From Diadema antillarum (lineage: Eukaryota): a DNA stretch of 64,000 nucleotides. The notes below the pieces were generated by a model. That model did not search any database. It was not told the DNA's origin and was given only the letters and a program-made list of their open reading frames with translations. The position numbers were made by a program, and so were the translations under genes. The stretch lies in NCBI RefSeq assembly GCF_040938485.1, contig NW_027271782.1, forward strand, positions 1 to 64,000, read 5' to 3'. Below are positions 1-62,693 of this stretch, piece after piece. Positions within the stretch are counted from its first letter, which is position 1; each line of letters starts with the position of its first letter.

Positions 1-3000
1 ACTTCTTCATCTGCAATTACAGAGAATGGGACGGCAACCAGGACACCGATTCATACGTGTGGGTCTACGACAACAGCACGGGTGAGGAATCATTCTGATC
101 AGTATACTGACTACGTTCCAAAAGCAGAGCTGTTCAGATTATATTCATGCATCTGTCTATTAAGAAATGAATTAGTGTCATTAAAATTATGTATTTGTAG
201 TAATAGAGTACCTCATTTATAAATGTATTTGTAAAGGTTATATTCATACATCTGTCTATTAAGAAATAAATCAGTAGTGTCATTAAAATTATGTATTTGT
301 AGTGATAAGATACCTCATTTATAAATGTATTTGTGAAGGTTATATTCATACATCTGTCTATCGAGAAATACATCAGTAGTGTCATTCAAATGATGTATGT
401 GTAGTGATAAAATACGGTACATTTAATGTATACATCTGTCTATTGAGAAATGAATTAGTGTCATTAAAAAGATGTATTTGGAGTGATAAAATACCTCATC
501 TATACATGTATTTGTAACAAGACTTGTGATATTCAAAATTTGTACCACGTGACATACATTGCTTTCGTTATAGTTAATGGTCGTGCGCTAGAACTTTTAA
601 TTGTTGCAAATACAGGGCGTAGACAAATCAACGTTATGAATACACTTTATCATAGCTAAAACAAAAGGCTACATGCTTTTGTGCGATGAACTTAGAACAA
701 AATCCGAAATTCCGACAATGTGTAGTAAAGTAGTCCATGGTCGACATATTAAATTAGAATAAATTTAAGCGAGAGATTATTCCGTAGAGGAGTGAAGATA
801 TGAGATTTGAGTGTTATTCGATAGTTATTTGTCTGCTCTCTGTACAAATGAAATTTTGAAGACAGCAACTGCTTTGATCTGCAGTAGATGACAGGTTGCA
901 TTTCCGCTGGTACTTTTTTTTCCCCCGATATGTTTGTTAAAAAAAAAAATGTTGGTCAGTAGTTGCGATCTCACAAATTTCATTTGCACAGAGGGCAAAC
1001 AAATCATGACCCTTCCTCTTAAAAAAAACCACTAAAAGTCTCATAACATGGCACTGTTATCCACGAGTGTCCCTGTATTCTCAATACAGGGACACTAGTA
1101 TCCACTATACCACAGCGCCCCAACAGTTATAATCATGTCGATTCTCTCTTTTTGTTTTTCTTTGTCTTTGCTCGCTACGCATTCACAGATTCGTTTGTCA
1201 CACACCAAACGATTGCGACGAAGGGCTGTGTAACGCCCGCCACCTTGAGATCGACCGAGCATGGCTTCTATCTCTTCATCAGCAACTACTACGCGCCCAG
1301 TAGCTACACCCAGAATTCGCAGGTTTACAAGGTAAATGCACTGTGATCATGTTTCATCTAAAGAGGGGGTGTACTCGAAAGAAACATGTGAGTTTTCGAT
1401 AGGCCTATAGTCCATTTGGGGAGCAATCATTATTGAACATTTTCAGCAATTTGTCGACATGGCGAACCGCAGAGGGTGCAGAATTCAGTGAGATGTGAAG
1501 CCGGAGGTGGCGAAATGTCCCGACCGACCATGTAATTTAAGCGCTTTTACGTTGCCACAATGTATGGGTTAGCTAAAAATCGCAGACAATGATAATTAAA
1601 AATGGTTCTTTTTTTTCTTTTCTCACCTCGCCTTTCTGTCTGGTTTTGCGAGAACATTAGACAGTACGCCGAAGCAAAATAGAATAGAAATGAACAAACC
1701 GACTCGACGTAACAGCTTAAACCTACACAAAAAGAAATGCCGATCGTGCAGAATTGGGATATGATAAAATCGCTACGATTTTATTTATAGAAATCAACAT
1801 CACATTTACTTTCACTCGTGAACCACCTCCCCCCCCCCCCCACATGCCAATATCTCATAGAGGTAATCGTATAATAATGTCATTATTGTCATTACTATAT
1901 CACTATCCCCAACATTGTCATCATCCTTGGTCATTATTTTTTGGTCGATAATCCGCAGTGGTACCCGCGATACGAACGCTTCGTTTGGATTCATGACATC
2001 TCAACCACCGGTGCCTTCATGAGTGACATCTTCGAGATCGACTCGGTGATCTACGTGGCGGTCCCATTCTACAGAGACGGTAGCAACTACGAGCTGACGT
2101 CGGAAGTGTGGGGGCAGTCCGGAAGTTATGGTACGTTGACCTTTCGACCCCTCAGTTTTGTCTTATTTTGTTACATTATGAAAGCAAGATAAACGCGATG
2201 GATCTTTCCCTTTTGTCGGCTGTTGTTTGTTCTTCAGTTTAAAACTATGTTGCAGTTGCCTTCCTCGTTCGAGTTGATTCTTTGACGTATTATGAATGCT
2301 GTATACGGTTAAAGTGTGGTAAAATTACCTTTTGATACAAGCTCTATGAGCAAGTCCATTTGATAAAGAGGGACTTTCCAAACTCCCGGCAACAATTAGT
2401 GTCCACGGGCGTACACACACTGTAGAATTGTGCTTCATTATGTTCATGAAAAAATAGATTCTAACCTAAAGATCGAAACACGTCTGTATGAAGTGATCCG
2501 TGATGTAGTAGACTTTAAGGGATGGTACAGTATTGGTGGAGATGAAAATCGGGCTTTAACTTTTATGCGAGATACCAAGAAAACACTTACGAAATAACAC
2601 AGAGCATACAATTTCAAGAGGAATACAAAGTTTATTAAGCTTTTTGATGAAAATCGGGTTTGAAATAGCTGAAACATTAAAAAAAAAGTAAAACAAAATG
2701 ATCGTAATAAAATGTGGGTCCCACACTTTATTAGGATCACTCTGTTTTGGATATCTCCGCCCTTTGAAAATCAATTTTTATCAAATAAACATATTTCATA
2801 AGAGGTTTCTCATTATCTCACAAAAAAAAAATGATAGAAACCTGAAGTTAAGTCTCTACCAAAACAATAGGATCCCTTTAAGAAAGACAGTGATGCGAGT
2901 AGAAATGCATTTAAACCTGCTCGTTGACAAACGGTCGTGTGATTGGATCGTCGCATCGCATCACTCTGCAAACAAACAACGCATAAACAAAACAAAACCA

Positions 3001-5966
3001 CAAAATGTCCAGAACATGGACAACCTCTGTCAGTGCTTTCTCTTCTTGTCATAATCATGTGTGGATCAGACATTCACCGGGGTTGCTATATCGACGGCAC
3101 GAGTCGGGCGCTCGACGGCGACTCCTTCTCCTCCGATTCGATGACGGTGACACTGTGCATCACGTATTGCCGAGATCGCGGCTACCCGTATGCCGGGCTC
3201 CAGGCGAGTAGCCATTGTTTCTGCGGCGACGAAGATTACAGCGAGCATGGGGAGGCCAGCAGCGGGGACTGCAACCAGCAATGCACCGGCGACTCATCTT
3301 CCTACTGCGGTGGCTCTTGGAGGAACAACATCTACTCTACAGGTGGGTGCATGATACTGACCCGTTCAGCGGTTCTATATATGACAAGTTACCGCCTGGA
3401 CAATTACCCCAGACCCTCACCCTGCTCCTAACCCTGATCCTAACCCAGAACCCATTTATATGAAATCCTTTCACAAACCAATATTTAGCCTGGCACTGCC
3501 TGGGGTAGTAATTGTCCATGTAGGGTAATTGTCCTGATACGTGTTCAGCACCAATACGCCAATTCGTAGTTCCACTTAGGCATAAGCAGAATAGGTTCAT
3601 ATCATGTAATAACGGGCATGTTGTTTTAGATTCACTGAGATAAAGCATCTGTAATAGAATGATTGCTATTTATGATGAATCCTTAAAATGGTACTTGCCA
3701 GCATGCCCCTCTGTCAAACAGTAACAAAGTGTCAAATAAAGCCTTTCAAGTGCTATTGAATTTGGCAATATCATAATGCATTATATCTGTCAGTGCATTC
3801 AAAGCAAAACATTGAAATGGATGCTTTCCCGGCGAATGTAAATTGACGAGATGTTCTAGTCACCTGATCTACACAGGTTTATTCTGCGCATCAACAAGAA
3901 TTCCATGAATTGTTACGTCGGGCAAGGTTATGCAGTATGTCGCTTTGAAAACGAGCGAAGTGCCTAACCTATCAATTGGTTAAAAAAAGAAAGTCTTTGT
4001 TTTCATTTTCATTAGTTCTACTAAAGTCTACTGCTACTTATAGGCTGATATAAAACGACATTAAAAGATTTGCCGCGATCGAACTTTGCCGGTGATTTTC
4101 TTTATGGAGAAAGAAAACATGTGTCTAGAGCTACCCTGCCATTTCGAAAGTAACGTTTATTGTATGGTATAGCTGTCGCAATTTCCATCAGATAATTTCA
4201 CTCCAAGTATACGAACCTCGCAATCTCATCATCAGCAAAGTTTGGTCGTTTGTAAATTAGGCAGTGCGTTCGGTGCCAACGTGTCATTATTTTGGGGGTC
4301 TCTTTTAAGATCAATCTTGGACGAATGTCCAGGACTTGCCCGGCTCTCCTGGCGCGGCCACGGGGGCGAAGTACTACTCTCACGGCGGCTCACACTACCT
4401 CGTGATTACCAGGTACGCCGATTCAGAAGAATGCAACAAGGATATGATGGTGTACGTGTGGAACGCGGGCTCGTCCGAGTGGGAAGTGCACCAGACGATC
4501 ACACTGGAATGGACGTGCCCGATCGATGCCGAAATCTTTGAGGTAGAATAAAGCTCGGTTTCTAATCATTCGAATACCCGTAACTCGACCTATTTTCATG
4601 CAATCATTGACATACTGCATTTCCTATATCGAAATTCTTCCACCCGTTCGTCTAGAAAAATTTATCTGTGCAATATGATATCCAGTGTACATAGATTGAA
4701 AGCAGCAATATCAGTAGAATGCATAGGTAAGATTTTGAGGAAAGTTGGACAATCGATTCAAAAGTTACGAATTTTCAAACTCTCCGAGCCGTCCGTCATT
4801 GCTGGGTGAGGTAATGCTTATTGCTACACTTCGTGACGTCATTATGGACAACAATTATAAAATGAAATGACAACGACACTCAACACAAATTTCACTTTTC
4901 TAGCATAGTGAAAGAGCCCTTGACTTACCTCTTTCGGAAAGTAGGAGAAATACCATACGTCAGTAACAAGTTGATGGAATGTAAATTTGACTGAAAAAAA
5001 AATGAGATTTTGTGGAATTCCGATATTTTTCTTATCTTATCAATGCTTATTGTAAAAAATGACATGAACAGTTGAATTCTTCTTTTGGCAGCAATGATGG
5101 TACCGAAGCTTTAAACATTTTCCTGCAACTTTGATTTCATTTCAATTTCATCTGCTTATGTGTTGCGTAGTATTGTTAATTTCACGTAGTTTTCTTTGTT
5201 ACTACATTGTAATGATATTGTGTATGTAAATGTTTTTGCATTGTTGGAAATGAAGTAAATGAAAATGAAAAAAAAAGAATGAAAAAATAACGTAATCATA
5301 ACATTTGAATCGATTATCCGATTTTCCTTAAACTTTCACTGTCAGACTGTTGTGTTCTACTACTAATGGAGTTTTCACTCAATCCACATTCTTATTTGGG
5401 CTTTGATTTCCTTGAAGGCCAATACAATCTTATACCAATGCATGGATGCATGCAGGGACGTGTAATTATGTCCCCCAATGCTATACCTGTAACAGTATTT
5501 TCTCCAAAGTTTTACTTTCTCTGCTTTCCTCGCGCTTTTATCTCCCTTTCTCCCCCCCCCCCCCCCCTCCTCACCCCTCTCCTTTTCACTGTTGAGTGAC
5601 ATCGATTTCATGTTACCTCTTCTTTCATATATCCCTATCTTATTATATCGTTTAAGTTATTTATCATTGATTTTACCCACCCTACCAAATCAATCTGCTC
5701 AGAAAAATGGAAGAAAGTTCATGTTGGTCACCAACCTCCGCATCGAAAGAAATATTGAGTCAGACGATGGTACTTTGGTGCAAACGCCCGTTCTCGAGCT
5801 CAAAGGAACAATGTGGGTGAGACACTCCAGCTTGGACGGGGTCACCGTCTACGACTTCTCGACGTTCGAACGCGACGGCGAGCTGTACATCGTCCAGGTG
5901 GCCGGACGGAATGCGACGGGCTCGACGTACAGAGACTGCCCGCACAAGATCTACCACTGGGTCTGA
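1..5966 (+). CDS. EAR/EPTP-repeat (TSPEAR/LGI-like) beta-propeller protein with an inserted WSC domain; 5' end lies outside the window
   Basis: Six GT-AG exons join in frame: <1-81, 1189-1331, 1959-2130, 3070-3342, 4310-4542, 5703-5966 (TGA). The translation shows six EAR-like units of the form F/W..Q.I.T.G...F...YL.(V/I).N...S.VY.W, e.g. SFVTHQTIATKG..FYLFISNY..NSQVYKW and RFVWIHDISTTGA..IFEIDSVIYVAV..TSEVW. Family assignment is from motif recognition. Confidence 0.85.
138..519. repeat. AT-rich ~100-bp tandem repeat, about 4 copies, in the first visible intron
   Basis: TATATTCAT.CATCTGTCTAT recurs at ~140, ~240 and ~341, with a shortened copy at ~430. Confidence 0.9.
2518..2877. mobile_element. 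Degenerate Kolobok-type (TTAA) MITE, family B
   Basis: AGGGAT..TGGTGGAGA / TCTCTACCA..ATCCCT terminal inverted repeats (19/25 match), flanked by TTTA and TTAA. The interior is homologous to 44030-44402. Confidence 0.7.
3070..3342 (+). other. WSC domain encoded by one symmetric phase 1-1 exon
   Basis: RGCYID..RAL..DSMTVTLCITYCRDRGYPYAGLQASSHCFCG..DCNQQCTGDSSSYCGGSWRNNIY is a canonical 8-Cys WSC pattern. Acceptor AG 3068-3069, donor GT 3343-3344; length 273 nt. Confidence 0.93.
3398..3534. mobile_element. Small inverted-repeat element with a degenerate (CCCTAA)-like interior
   Basis: GGACAATTACCC 3398-3409 and GGGTAATTGTCC 3523-3534 are perfect inverted repeats; interior reads ccctcaccctgctcctaaccctgatcctaaccc. 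Confidence 0.55.
3554..3995. mobile_element. Degenerate copy of the MITE at 59687-60130
   Basis: Colinear similarity with 59687-60085, e.g. GAAATGGATGCTTTCCC, TTTGGCAATATCA, TTATGCA.TATGTCGCT.TGAA. Confidence 0.75.
4670..5415. mobile_element. Old, interrupted Kolobok-type MITE, family A
   Basis: Left part (TTTGAGGAAAGTTGGACAATCGATTCAAAAGTTA) and right part (CGATTATCCGATTTTCCTTAAACTTTCACTG..CACTCAATCCACATT) match the arms of 18638-19195. Boundaries are approximate. Confidence 0.65.
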
Positions 5967-9233: not shown

Positions 9234-12200
9234 CAACAATCGGCGACAAGAGCGCCCCGTCACTTTCGCCGAGTTCGGCCTGGATTTGAAACCGTACTTC
9301 ACCGAGTTCAAGGATCACGACAGGCCATCCACCTTCGCTGATTTCGGTGTCGACGTCGAGCGCGAGCGATCTACCATAGACACTCTCGTCGGACCGGTAT
9401 GTCACCTTTTTTTAGTGAATCATAAATTGACAATTTGCTTAAGTAGTTAATCACCCCTTCCCTCTTAAATGACAGTTACTAAATATGAGAATCATTGATG
9501 GGGGGGGGGGGGGTTCGATTCCATTCGGCCGATTAACACCTAATTCTTTCAAATATTTCTGCAAAGGTAGACCTGAATTCTGTTTTCTTTTCCTGTTTTG
9601 TTGAGTCGTGCTGTATTGGCGTGACCTATTGTTGCGAGAAAAACAAAGGGCAAACTGCCTTATCTTCCGAACTAACTCACCATGTCTTAGATATACCTAT
9701 TCCCGTATAGAAGTGTATATACAAATACTAAATGTGTATGACCACGTGTTCATTTGTCACCAACCAATTACAAAAGTGAGATATTTTTGAGGCACTGTGT
9801 AATAGGTAGCTAAATTGGCAATGTCATATGCGTAAGAGTGTGTAAGAATGATATTCAAGTATGAGTGAGTTTATTGGGTCAGTTGACTGTCGTCATTATA
9901 TGTAATGATATTGGCATTGCGTCACTGTTGATGATTTTGCTTTCATACAAATACGGGTAATATTTACACAAAGTTTATCCTTGACATCGTCATGTATGTC
10001 GTTTAATGTCTTTCAAGAATTCTTGTCAGATTAAATCAATTAGTAACTATAATGGAAAGACAACATAATTTACCTCATATTCTAGGAGTAATTAAACCTA
10101 AAAAACTGAACATTATAAATAGAAAGCATTGAGACTACATTTTCAACAAATTGCGACATAATGTATGATGATGATTGGTTGATTGATTGATTGGTTGATT
10201 CTATTTTATTTCTGTATTCCTTTTCATACATAAATGTAATACAAAGTCAATTGAACTAACTAATTGGGCACATTATCATTTGAATCTGAAAGTTGAAACA
10301 GATAAATCGTTGAATTCAAATATCCAACATCGTTCTACTAAAATACAAAATGAAAACGAGCAGGCGTTATTTCATGCATAAATGAATTCCGTGTTCCTGC
10401 CGTTCAAAAGAAAAAAATTAAGCAACTCTAGATATAACACAAATACAGGAGACTATCATCATAAGCAAACGTTTGACGAGGATAATTGCCTCAGAAATGA
10501 TTGTCTAAATATCAAAGACGACATACTAAGAAGATATATTCAAGTCATCACTCACTAAGTGCAAGGGCGAGAGAGAGCTTATAATGGCCTCGCAAACATT
10601 GTCTTCCTTTCATAATATTCAGTGGAAATTTGATGCTTGTCAGTCGTGTTGGTCCATTTCTCATCACCCGAGCCGAGCCTGCAGTGTGTTACCTCTGCGG
10701 AGCTAACAAAATCTTGTCCTCAGCGGGTTTGTAATGGTGCCCAAATCCTATACAAGCTGTTGCATGGGAGATAAACCTATGTGATATTTCAAAATAAGTA
10801 AACATACCTCCCCCCTTCCAAAAACAAAAAGTCGTGAGGATTGAAAGTCTTCCTTTGCAGAACACAGTGCGTGTTATTTTCTTCATGAAGTCACTCCATC
10901 ACAACAATTCAGTATCCTATTCCTTCATTCATTTNNNNNNNNNNNNNNNNNNNNNNNNNNNNNNNNNNNNNNNNNNNNNNNNNNNNNNNNNNNNNNNNNN
11001 NNNNNNNNNNNNNNNNNNNNNNNNNNNNNNNNNNNNNNNNNNNNNNNNNNNNNNNNNNNNNNNNNNNNNNNNNNNNNNNNNNNNNNNNNNNNNNNNNNNN
11101 NNNNNNNNNNNNNNNNNNNNNNNNNNNNNNNNNNNNNNNNNNNNNNNNNNNNNNNNNNNNNNNNNNNNNNNNNNNNNNNNNNNNNNNNNNNNNNNNNNNN
11201 NNNNNNNNNNNNNNNNNNNNNNNNNNNNNNNNNNNNNNNNNNNNNNNNNNNNNNNNNNNNNNNNNNNNNNNNNNNNNNNNNNNNNNNNNNNNNNNNNNNN
11301 NNNNNNNNNNNNNNNNNNNNNNNNNNNNNNNNNNNNNNNNNNNNNNNNNNNNNNNNNNNNNNNNNNNNNNNNNNNNNNNNNNNNNNNNNNNNNNNNNNNN
11401 NNNNNNNNNNNNNNNNNNNNNNNNNNNNNNNNNNNNNNNNNNNNNNNNNNNNNNNNNNNNNNNNNNNNNNNNNNNNNNNNNNNNNNNNNNNNNNNNNNNN
11501 NNNAGCACATTAATATGCCTCGTGAAACAACAACGTTTTCACAACAAAGAAATTTTAGCATTTAACAATTTGTTTCAAGTTTCTGTAGAACCAAGTATAG
11601 ACACTGTACTTTTAGTATGATACAAACTTTCCATACACTTTACAGCTAAATGGATGAAAAGAAACGGGGGAATTATGGGGATCATCATGTATCATGCGAA
11701 TATCAGTAGTGTGGGGATAAATGGTGACGAATATAATGAAAATCAAAATGTTTTACAGAAACCGCGACACCCAAGATCTAACACAATGAAATTATCACTT
11801 GGTCAACGTAGAGATCGTATATAAATATTTCCATTCAGAAGATGAGCAGGAAACGTGTTCACATTCGACGAATCACGAATAATGACAGCTACGATGAAAA
11901 CCTTGATGTGAGTTCATTTTAATCAGCTACTGCTTTATACGAGTACGTCGGACAAATTTATGAAGAAACCGTCAACTATGAACTCGGTATCATAAACCGT
12001 CCCATCACTCTCTTTAGGTAATTATATGCACATTAGCGTTCAATTTTTGTGATTTCTACAGCGTTCTAAGGCTGGAGTACAAAAACCAAGAGCACAAAAA
12101 AAAAGCAGGTAGCAATCCGTGCGAACACACTTGTGTTAGCATCTGTGTGCCGTCTCCATTCTACGTAAGATTCGCGTTACCTCTGTACAGCATTGTCCGT

Positions 12201-34672: not shown

Positions 34673-36906
34673 GCGGAGTGCCTTAACTCACCACTCTCCT
34701 GAAGGTGTCCAATAAAAGAAAAAGAAAAATACAGTATATACCGTCTTTCTCCGTTGCTATGCAGTGTCGGCAGCTGACTCTTATACACATTGTGTTGCAA
34801 TCCTTACTTTCGACGGTGCAACTGAAGATGATGATTATCCATAAAGAGCACGTGTCTGAAAATGTATTGGCGTCAGTTTGAAGAGCGGGTGCTGCAGCAG
34901 CAGCCTACAGAATTTATGGGACAAACACGACAAAGGACTGACGGATATCCATCAGCCATCCCGGAGCAGCCAATGAAAGTGACCCAGCAAATGGTGCAAT
35001 GAAAAAAATGTATGGATAATTCAAACATCATGAATTTGCATGATAACAACATAGTTGTGACTTATAGAACAAGCCTGTGATCACCACGCGCACTTCAGCC
35101 CTCGTGGCGGATGAAACAATATGACACCACCGTATGATTGCGATATTCATGTGATGTGCTTAGAGGATATTATTGTCATGATGATTTCATAGCTATCAGT
35201 ATCCATTGACACTTAACTTGATTTTTTTCCCTCATTTTTGCATCGTATTCATGTAAACTGCATGTGGCCCATTATCATCATAATCGTCATCGTCACACTC
35301 TCATCCCTAGATAAGAGGGATGTTATTGCAACTTTTGATTTCCATTCAAATTTATAGACATTATTCACAGTGGTAACGTCTTCCAATAAATTGTCATAGC
35401 ATTAATGATAGCAATGTTAATGTAGGAATGACCAAAATGACCAGACTAAAAACTGCAATACTCATGATATTCATGATAATGATGTGATATAAGGTAACAA
35501 TATCTAAAATAATGATAATGACACTTGATAATGCCAATTATACAAACCTGTAATTCTATCTATGGTAATGCTGCTGCTGCTGCTGTTACTGATGGTTGCT
35601 AATCACTGCTAATAATCATGTGTCACATATTCTATAATATTTTTTTCTAATATCTTACTTCAGATTACTTGGATACGCCCACAAAAAAAAAAAACTCAGA
35701 AACGATGCATGGTATGCTGCATTTATCTTTAATGACAATATTACTTCTATAATAATTATGAAATGAACATTTTTTTTTAGACTTTTTAATACGAGCGTTA
35801 ACGTACAAAATAAAATAAGTGACAGACTAATTTTTCTACAAATGTTGATAACGATTTGATGTAGATTCTGAAAAATGTGATGAAAATTGAACATAGAGAC
35901 CAATGGCATGCACCCTTTAAGTTGACCTTAACTTTAAGATTATCTTGAATCCTATGTGAAACACCCCATGTTCTTACTCCACCATCTACCACAGTCTTTT
36001 ATTATCTATGTTCACGACATAAGAAAGGAGTGACTTGTCTTTGTTTTTGTTTATCGAGAAAAATTTACCGCAGCTATGCACATACCCCCGACAATTAATT
36101 TTATGTCTTGATCGTGATTCTGAATCGACAAGTAAGTCAATAAATATCACAGAACCACAAGTGCAATACGTAGGCGCCTACACGTATTTAATAGGTCTAT
36201 ATTATGTGTGAAGTGCATCGATCAATATTATGTATATAAGTGATTTATAACAGAAAATATTACGTTCTTCGAATGGTTGTCTGCGCTGCTAGATTTAAGT
36301 TGAACATCAAAACAAACCACTACCGTGTGTGTGATGACGGCATGAAAAAGACCATGTGTGTACAAATTTTGAATTGTGTGCATCTGAATATTTTGCGGGT
36401 CTTTCAGCTCTTCAGCGATCGAACGTCGATTATGTGTTTATCATATTACGTACTAAGTAATATTATTGTATAAAATCATCACAGCAAATATAAACTTGTA
36501 AAGATGATATCAACTACAGATGGCCTATAATTCGTGTTTCTTATGTATGAGTCGGTATTTTACATGAACTTTCCGCATCGCGTCCCCCGTCCAAACTTCA
36601 AAACGGCAACTCACAGATAAAAACATATCTAATCACATAATTGCATTGTCAATCAAATGACACTCATCACATGACCATTCGATCACATACACAAACATTT
36701 ATACTGTATGTCTTATATTGTATGCGCATTGGTATATCCAGACATATTGATAATAACTATACACACTCGAGTGGTTAGAATTTAACACGTGAACATTTCG
36801 TTGTTCTGCTGCACCAAAACAAACGATATATTACGAGCATCATAAATCATGAATAAAATATCATTAAGAACTATAATGGTACACCAGAAGGTGGTATATT
36901 GTATTC

Positions 36907-37044
36907 NNNNNNNNNNNNNNNNNNNNNNNNNNNNNNNNNNNNNNNNNNNNNNNNNNNNNNNNNNNNNNNNNNNNNNNNNNNNNNNNNNNNNNNNNNNNNN
37001 NNNNNNNNNNNNNNNNNNNNNNNNNNNNNNNNNNNNNNNNNNNN
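36907..37044. other. Assembly gap (N run)
   Basis: Run of N. Confidence 1.
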
Positions 37045-51049: not shown

Positions 51050-53657
51050 CTACCTTGGCATTAGCACAGTGCTGGCACTTCCATGTGACCTGTGATCATT
51101 TAGCTGTGAAACCGAGGTGAAGTGTGAGTCTGACATGGAGGTGGTTTCCGAGTTGGGAGAGGAGGTGGTAAAGAAGCTGCCTGGAAGAACCAGGGTGCAA
51201 CAGGACATCCTGAGGCTCGAATCCGGTAACTCGGCAACCACATCCCATTCGTCCGCATCCACGTTGTAGCAGTGGACATCCTTCTCCCGCTGCCTTCCGA
51301 GGCCGTTGTAGCCGCCGATGACGAAGATCTTCTTGTCCTCTGTTGCCACGCAACCTGCCATGCTGAGCCCCGTGAGCATCGGTGACATGGTGATCCACGC
51401 ATCATGCCGCGGGTCGTAGCGCTCAACACCCATTACGTCGACGCGATCACCGTACGGGTTGAGGTGGTTACCTCCCATCACATACATCATGCCTCGAATG
51501 CTGCACGTCATGTGGAACCCACGGGCAATGTTCATTTGGCACTTGGGGATCCAGTGGTCAGTCTCATGGTCATACATGTAGCACATTTTGCTAAAATTGT
51601 GGCTTGCAAATCCACCGGTAATGTATAAGTAGTTATTCACAACTGTACCAGAATGTGCGTAGGTGGGTTCGTCCAGCCGGTGGATGTATCGCCAGCGGTT
51701 TTCTGTCGGATTGAAAATCTCCACAGAAGCCAGAGGACCCTGCTCATTCTTGCCCCCGATGGCAACAAGGCTGTCGTTCAGAGTTGTGAGATAGAAGAAG
51801 GCACGCCGCTGCTGCATGGGACACATTTGTAGCCACTTATTGAATCGCGGATCAAAGCGGTGGACCGTTCCTATACTCTCCTTGCCGTTGGAGTTGAGCG
51901 TGACCTGACCCCCCACCACATAGAGGAAGTGGTTGAGATTAGCCACGCAGTGGTCAACCCTCTTCAGCGGCATGCGAGCCAGCTCCTTCCACACGAAGTT
52001 GAGCTCGTCGAGTACCAAGACCTTGTTGCTGACCCGGTGGTGGGGGAGCTCCCCACCCATCATTACGATCACCTCCCTGGTGGAGCGGAGACGGGTGCGA
52101 GGCGTCTGCATGGAGTGCTGACGGTGGGGGACGAGGTGGTAGTTGAGGGCCTCGATGAGGTAGTGGTGGCAGGCGGGATCTTCCATCATGAAGGAATGCG
52201 ACTGGACGTGTTCCACAAGATCATCACTTGCGATGAGAGGGAAGCGAATATGTTTCATCAGCTGGGGTGCATACCTGCCAGACAGTGATGAAACAATTAA
52301 AAAAGAAATTAATAACTAACTGTGCTTCTGGGAGATAGATGATAAAACAAAGCAATGGCGATAACCTTATCACTATCATATGAATGACATTTTTTTTAAT
52401 AACATTTCTGTGTTCCTATGCGGATGCAATCCAAAGAAAACATGTCAACATGATTATTCAGTGACACATTTGATGAAAAGAGTGTAAGTTTGTAATAGAG
52501 AAAAACAGACTCAATGCATTGTATTTTGTACTAGACTAACATAATCCTTTTTTCCCCAACATTTTCCAACATCCAACATCATGGAAAAGTGACTTTTTAA
52601 ACATTTCTTGGAATACTGAGCAAATTAATACCAGAATGCCCTTCAAAAGAAGCTTTGATAATCTGGGTCATATACTGTATGTGTGCTAAGGATTGGTCAT
52701 TTCTTTGCACACAAGTAAATTGTTCTATGAAATCAATATTTTATCTAAACAGCTTTAAATACACAATCATGCACACATTTTCCTCACGGTATATGTACAT
52801 TCTGGATTCATTGATATGATTATGAAAGATAGCTGATCTATAGCAAAATCATTATAATGATTACCAGCAACTCTACACTTCTGCCTCATTTACATTTCAT
52901 GTCGAAACATAGTGTGTTCTGAAAAATGATTGTGGATCAATATCAATGTACCATACCTAACTCTGTTGTGTTTGTCATGGTCAATCCACCTGGCTCCAAT
53001 CTTAAAGAGCTCAATCTCGGATCCGATGGACATGCGATCCTGTTTGAGGAAGAAGCACATGTCATCATATTTGAGCGACTGAAACTCCGGTCTCTCTGCC
53101 ACCGCTGTGAAGTTGTCCACAATAAAGTCATGCGCGTCCTTCTCCAAGTCTTTGAAGCCAAACTTTCTCGACAGGTGCAGGACACCGATGCAGTTCTCGA
53201 GGGCGAGGACTGAGGTGAGGTACTGGATGCAGATGTTGATGACACTATGCATCTTCAGCTGCACGGCCCCGCTAACCACCTTGCGCACATTCTCCAGGGT
53301 CAGCTCGATCTGCGAGGTGTAGGCGTAGTTGAGCAGGAGCTCGAGGCAGTCTTGGGTGATGTTGCTGTGTAGCTGGACGTCGCGCACCGTGTCATTCTCC
53401 ATGTAGATGGCGCGGAAGTACTCGCTGCACGAGGCCAGGACGGCCCGGTGGACGGAGAAGTGGCGGCCGTTGGCGATGATGGTGCCGTCGCAGAGGATGC
53501 GCTCTCGCCACAGCTGGTACAGTTGTCCCAGGACGTTGGCGCTGTGCTCGGCACACTGGTACTGCCGACTTGGTGGTGGCGCGTGGTTCCAGTGCGGTTC
53601 AGGCCGTATAGGCTTCTGCATGCTGAAATTGCTGGATATTGCAAGGCGGTCAGCCAT
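51050..53657 (-). CDS. klhl31-like: Kelch-like BTB-BACK-Kelch protein (KLHL31/KLHL14-type), 641 aa; probable CUL3 substrate adaptor
   Basis: Exon 53657-52957 (BTB CDGTIIANGRHFSVHRAVLASCSEYF, BACK) splices at phase 2 to exon 52274-51050 (R-YAPQLMKHIRFPLI, six GG..Y/F..W Kelch repeats). The motifs RFDPRFNKW, RRAFFY, GGNHL, GDRVDVM and SCCTLVLP match my recollection of KLHL14/KLHL31, so the symbol is tentative. 5'UTR acceptor at 53717-53718. Confidence 0.93.
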
Positions 53658-61041: not shown

Positions 61042-61706
61042 CAGGTATATATATTTCATATCATGAACATGTACCACCTATTGGGCATAGACAGGATAGA
61101 ATGCAGTGCATTAGCTTTAACTTTTCTGCACTGGAGCTGGGATATCTATGTAAGCGTCTAATCTTGGAAATAAATTACCAATACTATTTTTTTTCCCCTC
61201 CAAGCTATGGTACATACACGGGATAATATCGCATATTAGGTGCGGCAAATATGCGTGTCACTGTCGGGGTTGCAAGTACACGTACCGTTGTATTTAACTT
61301 TTAAACATCTGGCATGCTATAGCATGATTGATATCACATAAATCAATAACACCATATGGGTGGCGTGTGAACAATCCAGTGCAGATGGAAGGGATAAATT
61401 TTCATATTCATTAACATGACCCAAGTTTGCTGTCGATCACGCTGATAATAGGCCTGCCGTGCTCGTATCCGGTGCTGCTTGCCATACACTGGTATTGCCT
61501 ACTCAGGTGTTCAAGGAATATAATCATGTTAACTGGCGTTCTACTTTGTTTTACAATGTGTAATCAGTGGTGCTGCGCAAGCTACTAGTATATCTCATCT
61601 ATAGGAGCTACCAGTTTGTTCATGCATGGTAAATATAAACATACCGTTTGATGACTGCGGTATTACCATCATCGACATCACCATTAATGGTAACACCAAA
61701 ATTGAC

Positions 61707-62693
61707 ATGATGACTTCTCTTAAGTTGTTGGGTCTACACCTACTGACGTGCGTCGTGACTGTTGGTACTCTAACAAATGCTATTGACGTGTACAATTGTT
61801 GCGCTGACACGGATAATGATATAACTTTTCGCTCCTCACTTTGGAATAATTCAAAATATGACTATGACATGTATTATGGACATCTGGACTGTCTATTCTG
61901 TCAAAATGGAGTAATGATCGGGGAGCACTGTTTGAAAGCTGGACAGGTGGATCGGTTTAAAGTGAAAGCAAATGATACCAAGGATATGTTGACGGTGACT
62001 CTAAGTGTCAGATACGTGCAGAAGGAAGACGAAGGTGTCTACATACTTCTCGTTGCTCAAGGCAAAGATGATGACAGGCATATTGACGTCACAGATACTT
62101 ATATTGATGTAATCACTCCGCCTGGACCGGTCGATTGTGAGGTCGTTTCATCGTCATATTCTCCAGACTGGATTGAGGTACACTGCTCTGCTCCGCTTGG
62201 AATGGACTCAGATCCACAAGCATCTATCAGCTGTTTCCAAAATAACGTCAAGGCACCATTTTTGAGCCCACCTGTTTACTCCTCGAATCACATACAGGCT
62301 GTCTTCTGGTTGAACGCCCAGTCTTCCATCAATTGCTGTTCCTTCGCCCCTCAGTGTGAGAAACGTCCTGAGCTTTGCCTCGAATTCGTATATCCCAGTA
62401 AAAATTCATCAGATTTGTTTGAGGAAAATGATTCCGAGCAAAGAGAAGCGACAACTCCTCGCGAGTCAACGATTGGACAATCAACTGTTCTCACCATGCT
62501 CACTACGTTAAAATATGCTGATAGCTATGGGGAAACTCATCAAACTTGCGTTGTATTAATCTCATGTATTGCTGTATCGTGTTTGGTAACTCTTGCTGTC
62601 GTAGTTATTATTAGTTGGAGATATGTTAATAAACATCGAGTAAAATACCTGTCATATCAAAGACCTCAGATAATGGAAACGTGTGCGATGTGA
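61707..62693 (+). CDS. Single-exon type-I membrane protein: signal peptide, atypical V-set Ig-like domain, Cys-rich domain, S/T stalk, TM, short tail
   Basis: The ORF is open from 61626 (355 aa). The likely start MMTSLKLLGLHLLTCVV at 61707 gives a signal peptide. V-set hallmarks RFKV..TVTLSV..VQKEDEGVY; TM CVVLISCIAVSCLVTLAVVVIISW followed by RYVNKHR; AATAAA at 62742. Confidence 0.8.
   Translation: MMTSLKLLGLHLLTCVVTVGTLTNAIDVYNCCADTDNDITFRSSLWNNSKYDYDMYYGHLDCLFCQNGVMIGEHCLKAGQVDRFKVKANDTKDMLTVTLSVRYVQKEDEGVYILLVAQGKDDDRHIDVTDTYIDVITPPGPVDCEVVSSSYSPDWIEVHCSAPLGMDSDPQASISCFQNNVKAPFLSPPVYSSNHIQAVFWLNAQSSINCCSFAPQCEKRPELCLEFVYPSKNSSDLFEENDSEQREATTPRESTIGQSTVLTMLTTLKYADSYGETHQTCVVLISCIAVSCLVTLAVVVIISWRYVNKHRVKYLSYQRPQIMETCAM

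Follow-up and report, generated by a model that had tools for sequence, protein, structure and literature searches.

A WSC domain nested in the predicted EAR propeller of an echinoderm protein from Diadema antillarum

Background

The closest described systems are LGI1-4, which combine leucine-rich repeats (LRR) with an EPTP/EAR propeller, and TSPEAR and ADGRV1. They share seven EAR/EPTP repeats with the Diadema antillarum protein described here, and they are secreted or extracellular, as the latter probably is, too. The N-terminal parts differ, as the Diadema protein begins with PAN and EGF domains, whereas the LGI/TSPEAR/ADGRV1 group has LRR or laminin-G domains. We know of no interruption of the propeller by a WSC domain or the like in LGI1-4, TSPEAR or ADGRV1.

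A domain nested in a propeller is familiar from the integrin alpha subunits, in which the I (vWA) domain sits between two blades of a seven-bladed propeller. The integrin FG-GAP propeller and its vWA insert are, however, unrelated to EAR and WSC, and in contrast to integrin alpha no membrane anchor was seen in the Diadema protein. An extracellular WSC domain with eight cysteines, as in Diadema, occurs among animal proteins in Kremen1 (Kringle-WSC-CUB), but there it is one link in a linear series of domains, whereas the Diadema WSC domain is nested in the propeller. Glycan binding is established for fungal WSC domains; to our knowledge, it is not established for those of animals.

The gene at the contig start

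The window, by which we mean the whole stretch of DNA analysed, comprises the first 64 kb of contig C894 of the D. antillarum assembly (1.75 Gb in total). It begins with what we read as the 3′ two thirds of a single-copy gene that RefSeq labels "uncharacterized protein". For this reading as a whole, comprising the domain architecture, an ancient insertion of the WSC domain and its constitutive inclusion, we estimate a probability of about 0.85. The 5′ end is missing from the window because the contig start cuts the gene. A 99%-identical sister copy, the haplotig C137, supplies the missing 5′ exons, which encode PAN/apple and EGF domains behind a hydrophobic N-terminus that resembles a signal peptide. 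The full order in the protein is thus signal peptide, PAN, EGF and seven EAR repeats, with the WSC domain nested between repeats 4 and 5. No paralogues were found in this genome beyond the haplotig copy, which makes the gene single-copy.

One non-synonymous change at window base 45 distinguishes the two haplotigs, which are identical throughout exons 2-6 and the adjoining splice flanks. For the C137 allele, RefSeq has a model of 548 amino acids (XP_071488444.1) that ends in ...EIFEVE, at the place corresponding to window 4540-4551, and omits the last exon. We rejected a true allelic difference as the explanation for this shorter model: given the identity of the two haplotigs in these exons and flanks, the model must be reading through the donor at window position 4542. 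Probably the annotation is inconsistent here, although a transcript with a retained intron is possible.

Farther upstream on C137, about 15-19 kb before the window start, lie open frames that by eye resemble a multi-pass membrane transporter, possibly of SLC10 type (12103-15564 of the reverse complement of the C137 stretch 2400001-2450000). They would belong to the upstream neighbour of the PAN-EGF-EAR-WSC gene.

Exon structure

Six exons of the gene lie on the + strand of the window. Joined in a script, they reproduced the partial RefSeq protein XP_071508151.1 (P0085) with zero mismatches; the same concatenation served the translation check against database proteins and the substitution counts. 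Searches were run with single exons or with database proteins. The exon cut by the contig start (1-81) holds the 3′ part of the exon for the end of EAR repeat 2. It matches residues 1-25 of the RefSeq protein exactly, continues upstream on C137 and ends in phase 1 with the donor GT at 82-83. EAR repeat 3 is encoded by the exon at 1189-1331 (143 nt, phase 1 to 0), and EAR repeat 4 by the exon at 1959-2130 (172 nt, phase 0 to 1), which is bordered by the acceptor AG at 1957-1958 and the donor GT at 2131-2132 and whose product ends in ...SEVWGQSGSY plus the G of a split codon. The intron between repeats 2 and 3 contains a tandem repeat of 102 bp at 139-415 (2.7 copies, 91% match), which is also present in Diadema setosum. 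It is intronic filler outside the protein.

The WSC domain is encoded by a single exon at 3070-3342 (273 nt, 91 codons, phase 1 to 1), which follows the acceptor AG at 3068-3069 and precedes the donor GT at 3343-3344. These splice sites are ordinary, with a pyrimidine-rich acceptor and the donor CAG|GTGGGT. The next exon, at 4310-4542 (233 nt, phase 1 to 0, acceptor AG at 4308-4309), encodes EAR repeat 5 and the first half of repeat 6 and opens with G|AT CAA (DQSWTNVQDLP). The last exon, at 5703-5966 (264 nt), completes repeat 6 and adds repeat 7 and the TGA stop. The split codon encodes Asp at both junctions of the WSC exon (G|AC and G|AT), and Asp would also result if the exon were skipped (G|AT).

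Domain assignments and predicted fold

The product of the WSC exon matches the Pfam WSC profile (PF01822) with 74.6 bits (E 7e-21, cut-off 27.8) over profile positions 2-82 of 82, and all eight cysteines can be read in the exon. The full-length profile match and the eight conserved cysteines make it a member of the WSC family; its closest solved relative is the WSC domain of Kremen1 (PDB, E 1.2e-16). Assigning the flanking repeats took more than single exons. Taken individually, the window exons score 14.9-20.4 bits against Pfam EPTP, all below the cut-off of 21: 14.9 bits for the open frame enclosing the repeat-3 exon, 17.5 bits for repeat 4, 20.4 bits for the exon at 4310-4542 and 15.3 bits for the frame enclosing the last exon. 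The allelic protein P0001, which contains every window exon except the last, reaches 43.1 bits against the same cut-off (PF03736) and thereby qualifies as an EPTP protein, along with 68.7 bits for WSC, 28.9 for PAN and 22.7 for EGF. Orthologues score 37-63 bits against Pfam EPTP. A phmmer search with the exon at 4310-4542 returned echinoderm orthologues and generic EPTP proteins.

AlphaFold2 was applied to the D. setosum orthologue in full length (P0086, with 95% identity to P0001), on the basis of an alignment of 12 sequences. The resulting model contains 28 strands in seven groups of four, with pLDDT values of 80-93 in the propeller; PAN, EGF and some loops of the WSC domain were poorly predicted, with pLDDT below 50. 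When the model was compared with the PDB by Foldseek, the top seven matches were all LGI1 EPTP structures, the best being 9kzc_B (E 6e-15, TM 0.80 by target). The solved LGI1 EPTP domain is thus the best match of the predicted propeller, at a sequence identity of only 11-13%. The WSC domain occupies residues 378-468, after the fourth strand of repeat 4 and before the first strand of repeat 5. According to this model, the seven EAR repeats fold as an LGI1-like seven-bladed propeller with the WSC domain nested inside.

Much of this had been anticipated from the letters alone. The earlier note had placed a 273-nt, phase 1-1 WSC exon at 3070-3342, which proved correct down to the GT-AG borders and an exact RefSeq translation, and its statement that Asp would be retained on skipping holds as well. 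It had named the domains as WSC and EAR/EPTP, in agreement with the Pfam scores, and had located WSC in the linker between two propeller repeats, which the LGI1-like model places between repeats 4 and 5. Structure prediction with the exon, which it had proposed as a check, gave the seven-bladed propeller with the nested WSC domain for the D. setosum orthologue.

Orthologues and conservation

Altogether, we read 15 database proteins, each with the WSC domain in the same place. Their ten source species are sea urchins, sea stars, brittle stars and sea cucumbers, and so cover four classes of echinoderms. A phmmer search with the repeat-5 exon against 1.84 billion representatives yielded the allele and the orthologues of Amphiura, Acanthaster and Holothuria, while word searches gave those of D. 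setosum, Lytechinus variegatus, L. pictus, Strongylocentrotus purpuratus, Patiria miniata and Asterias rubens. They include LOC594805 (S. purpuratus), LOC121427676 (L. variegatus), LOC110986543 (A. planci), LOC119743224 (P. miniata), LOC117302661 (A. rubens) and KAJ8022124.1 (H. leucospilota, named WSC domain-containing protein 2). These entries share the PAN-EGF-EAR-WSC-EAR layout and the intron positions of the D. antillarum gene. Each of the 12 proteins that were aligned has the WSC domain at the identical position; the entries for Patiria and Asterias are also annotated with WSC, EPTP and PAN. By both kinds of search, the protein was found in echinoderms only.

For six genomes, each annotated protein was mapped back onto its own genome. 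WSC is encoded by one phase 1-1 exon in every one of them, with lengths of 273 nt in D. antillarum and D. setosum, 267 nt in S. purpuratus, 270 nt in Acanthaster and Amphiura, and 276 nt in Holothuria. The positions and phases of the introns neighbouring the WSC exon are conserved in these genomes as well.

The WSC domain is also the best-conserved segment of the protein. Between Diadema and other sea urchins it shows 78-81% identity, compared with 34-66% for the repeats, and between Diadema and the other classes 48-53%, compared with 20-46%. The pair D. antillarum and D. setosum differs in the WSC exon by 16 synonymous and 2 non-synonymous changes (dN/dS 0.028); the same ratio is 0.057 in repeats 2-4 and 0.35 in repeats 5-7.

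The occurrence of the WSC domain at the same spot in ten species and four classes bears out the search for the insert in other echinoderms that had been suggested from the D. antillarum sequence. The accompanying claim that an EAR propeller interrupted by WSC was not known stands in part. The architecture is rare, since among 73 EPTP relatives from the phmmer search only three, the echinoderm orthologues, carry WSC (and PAN). The literature search found no paper on the combination of EPTP and WSC domains or on LOC594805. RefSeq and UniProt nevertheless already contain the layout for ten species of echinoderms, under the label "uncharacterized protein" and with Pfam domains. It is therefore rare and undescribed in the searched literature, but not new to the databases.

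Is the WSC exon constitutive?

The WSC exon could be skipped without loss of the reading frame, as it is of phase 1-1 and of a length divisible by three in all six genomes, and the earlier note had accordingly seen in it an optional lectin arm switched by splicing. Under that idea, a regulated cassette exon would allow the propeller to be made with or without the WSC arm. The model suggests that this might be tolerated: skipping would leave about 7 residues between the model strands at 373 and 472, where the other inter-repeat linkers have 2-4, and the propeller could probably still close. That an exon can be skipped in frame is, however, a consequence of phase-1 shuffling and does not point to regulation; extracellular modules that have been shuffled are as a rule symmetric, with phase 1-1. 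Cassette exons that are conserved usually have flanks of heightened conservation, too, which was not found for the WSC exon between D. antillarum and D. setosum. Its 100-nt flanking introns are 68% and 84% identical between the two species, compared with 93% and 89% for the flanks of the exon at 1959-2130 (range 87-93%), and its splice sites look ordinary. Every database protein contains WSC: no protein or isoform lacking it was found among the RefSeq, UniProt and other entries for the ten species, and the two L. pictus entries XP_063965515.1 and XP_063965516.1 represent one and the same 635-residue sequence (P0097) with the WSC domain present. A search with residues 26-299 of the partial D. 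antillarum protein (P0085:26-299) for partial or transcript-derived proteins of the skipped form produced nothing that scored. Finally, the domain presented as optional is the most constrained part of the protein, with the dN/dS of 0.028 given above. We therefore consider a regulated cassette exon improbable. Annotations and selection instead suggest that WSC is a constitutive, integral part of the protein.

Two further readings were weighed against constitutive inclusion. One combines skipping with a more general role of the gene structure, in that the phase-1 introns between repeats would act as landing sites for plug-in binding modules, and the WSC exon would additionally be skipped in some tissue or stage. 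We think this combination equally doubtful. The other attributes the WSC exon to a different transcript or to faulty annotation and takes the true protein to be an uninterrupted EAR propeller. Gene models in these genomes are indeed largely automatic, which gives such doubts some ground. Against this, six genomes from four classes, each assembled and annotated independently, have the WSC exon at the same location and in the same phase; the exon is under strong purifying selection in the reading frame used here; and the neighbouring + strand holds no further exons linked to WSC. An artefact of this kind is thus hardly conceivable.

Proposed origin and a second nested domain

The most likely natural origin of the nested WSC domain is exon shuffling, as had also been supposed in the earlier note, and the symmetric phase 1-1 exon in six genomes upholds that proposal. 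A phase 1-1 exon with the WSC domain would have landed in the phase-1 intron that separates repeats 4 and 5. This insertion would predate the divergence of the four eleutherozoan classes, those of the sea urchins, sea stars, brittle stars and sea cucumbers, and the domain would have been constitutive and strongly constrained since then. By analogy with the I domain of integrin alpha, the propeller probably serves as scaffold and protein-binding surface, to which the nested WSC and the N-terminal PAN domain could add further, possibly glycan-binding, sites. Ligand binding by the protein itself is likewise suggested by such analogy.

The Amphiura filiformis orthologues differ from the others by an extra F5/8 type C (discoidin) domain (89.8 bits) between EAR repeats 2 and 3. 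It corresponds to residues 242-389, approximately, of the Amphiura protein P0005 and is encoded at L017:12166-15927 by three exons of 192, 116 and 139 nt (447 nt in total), which together run from phase 1 to phase 1 and occupy the position of an ancestral phase-1 intron. The discoidin domain represents a second, independent nesting in the same propeller scaffold.

The gene thus offers a clean and datable case in which exon shuffling most likely put a whole domain inside a beta-propeller, and the same scaffold later took up a second, independent nested domain in brittle stars. This makes it a useful natural example for the study of protein evolution and for the design of propellers with inserted domains. 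It also points to an echinoderm-specific, probably secreted protein in which PAN, WSC and the EAR propeller come together as three putative binding modules. By itself, the finding answers no open question, and the gene models were already public.

Other features of the window

The remainder of the window contains several further open frames, judged here by their appearance. Runs of N, representing assembly gaps or masked sequence, are found at about 10930-11500 and about 36870-37010. On the - strand, a single open frame of 631 amino acids at 38550-40445 looks by eye like a receptor of the LINGO or AMIGO type, with an apparent signal peptide, leucine-rich repeats and an Ig-like domain as well as a transmembrane segment. 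Two more long open frames on the - strand, at 51050-52258 and 52890-53657, look like the BTB/BACK and Kelch-repeat parts of one KLHL-type gene. Close to the end of the window, the + strand carries a 355-aa open frame (61626-62693) that has a hydrophobic segment at the C-terminus and may encode an Ig-like membrane protein with a single pass.
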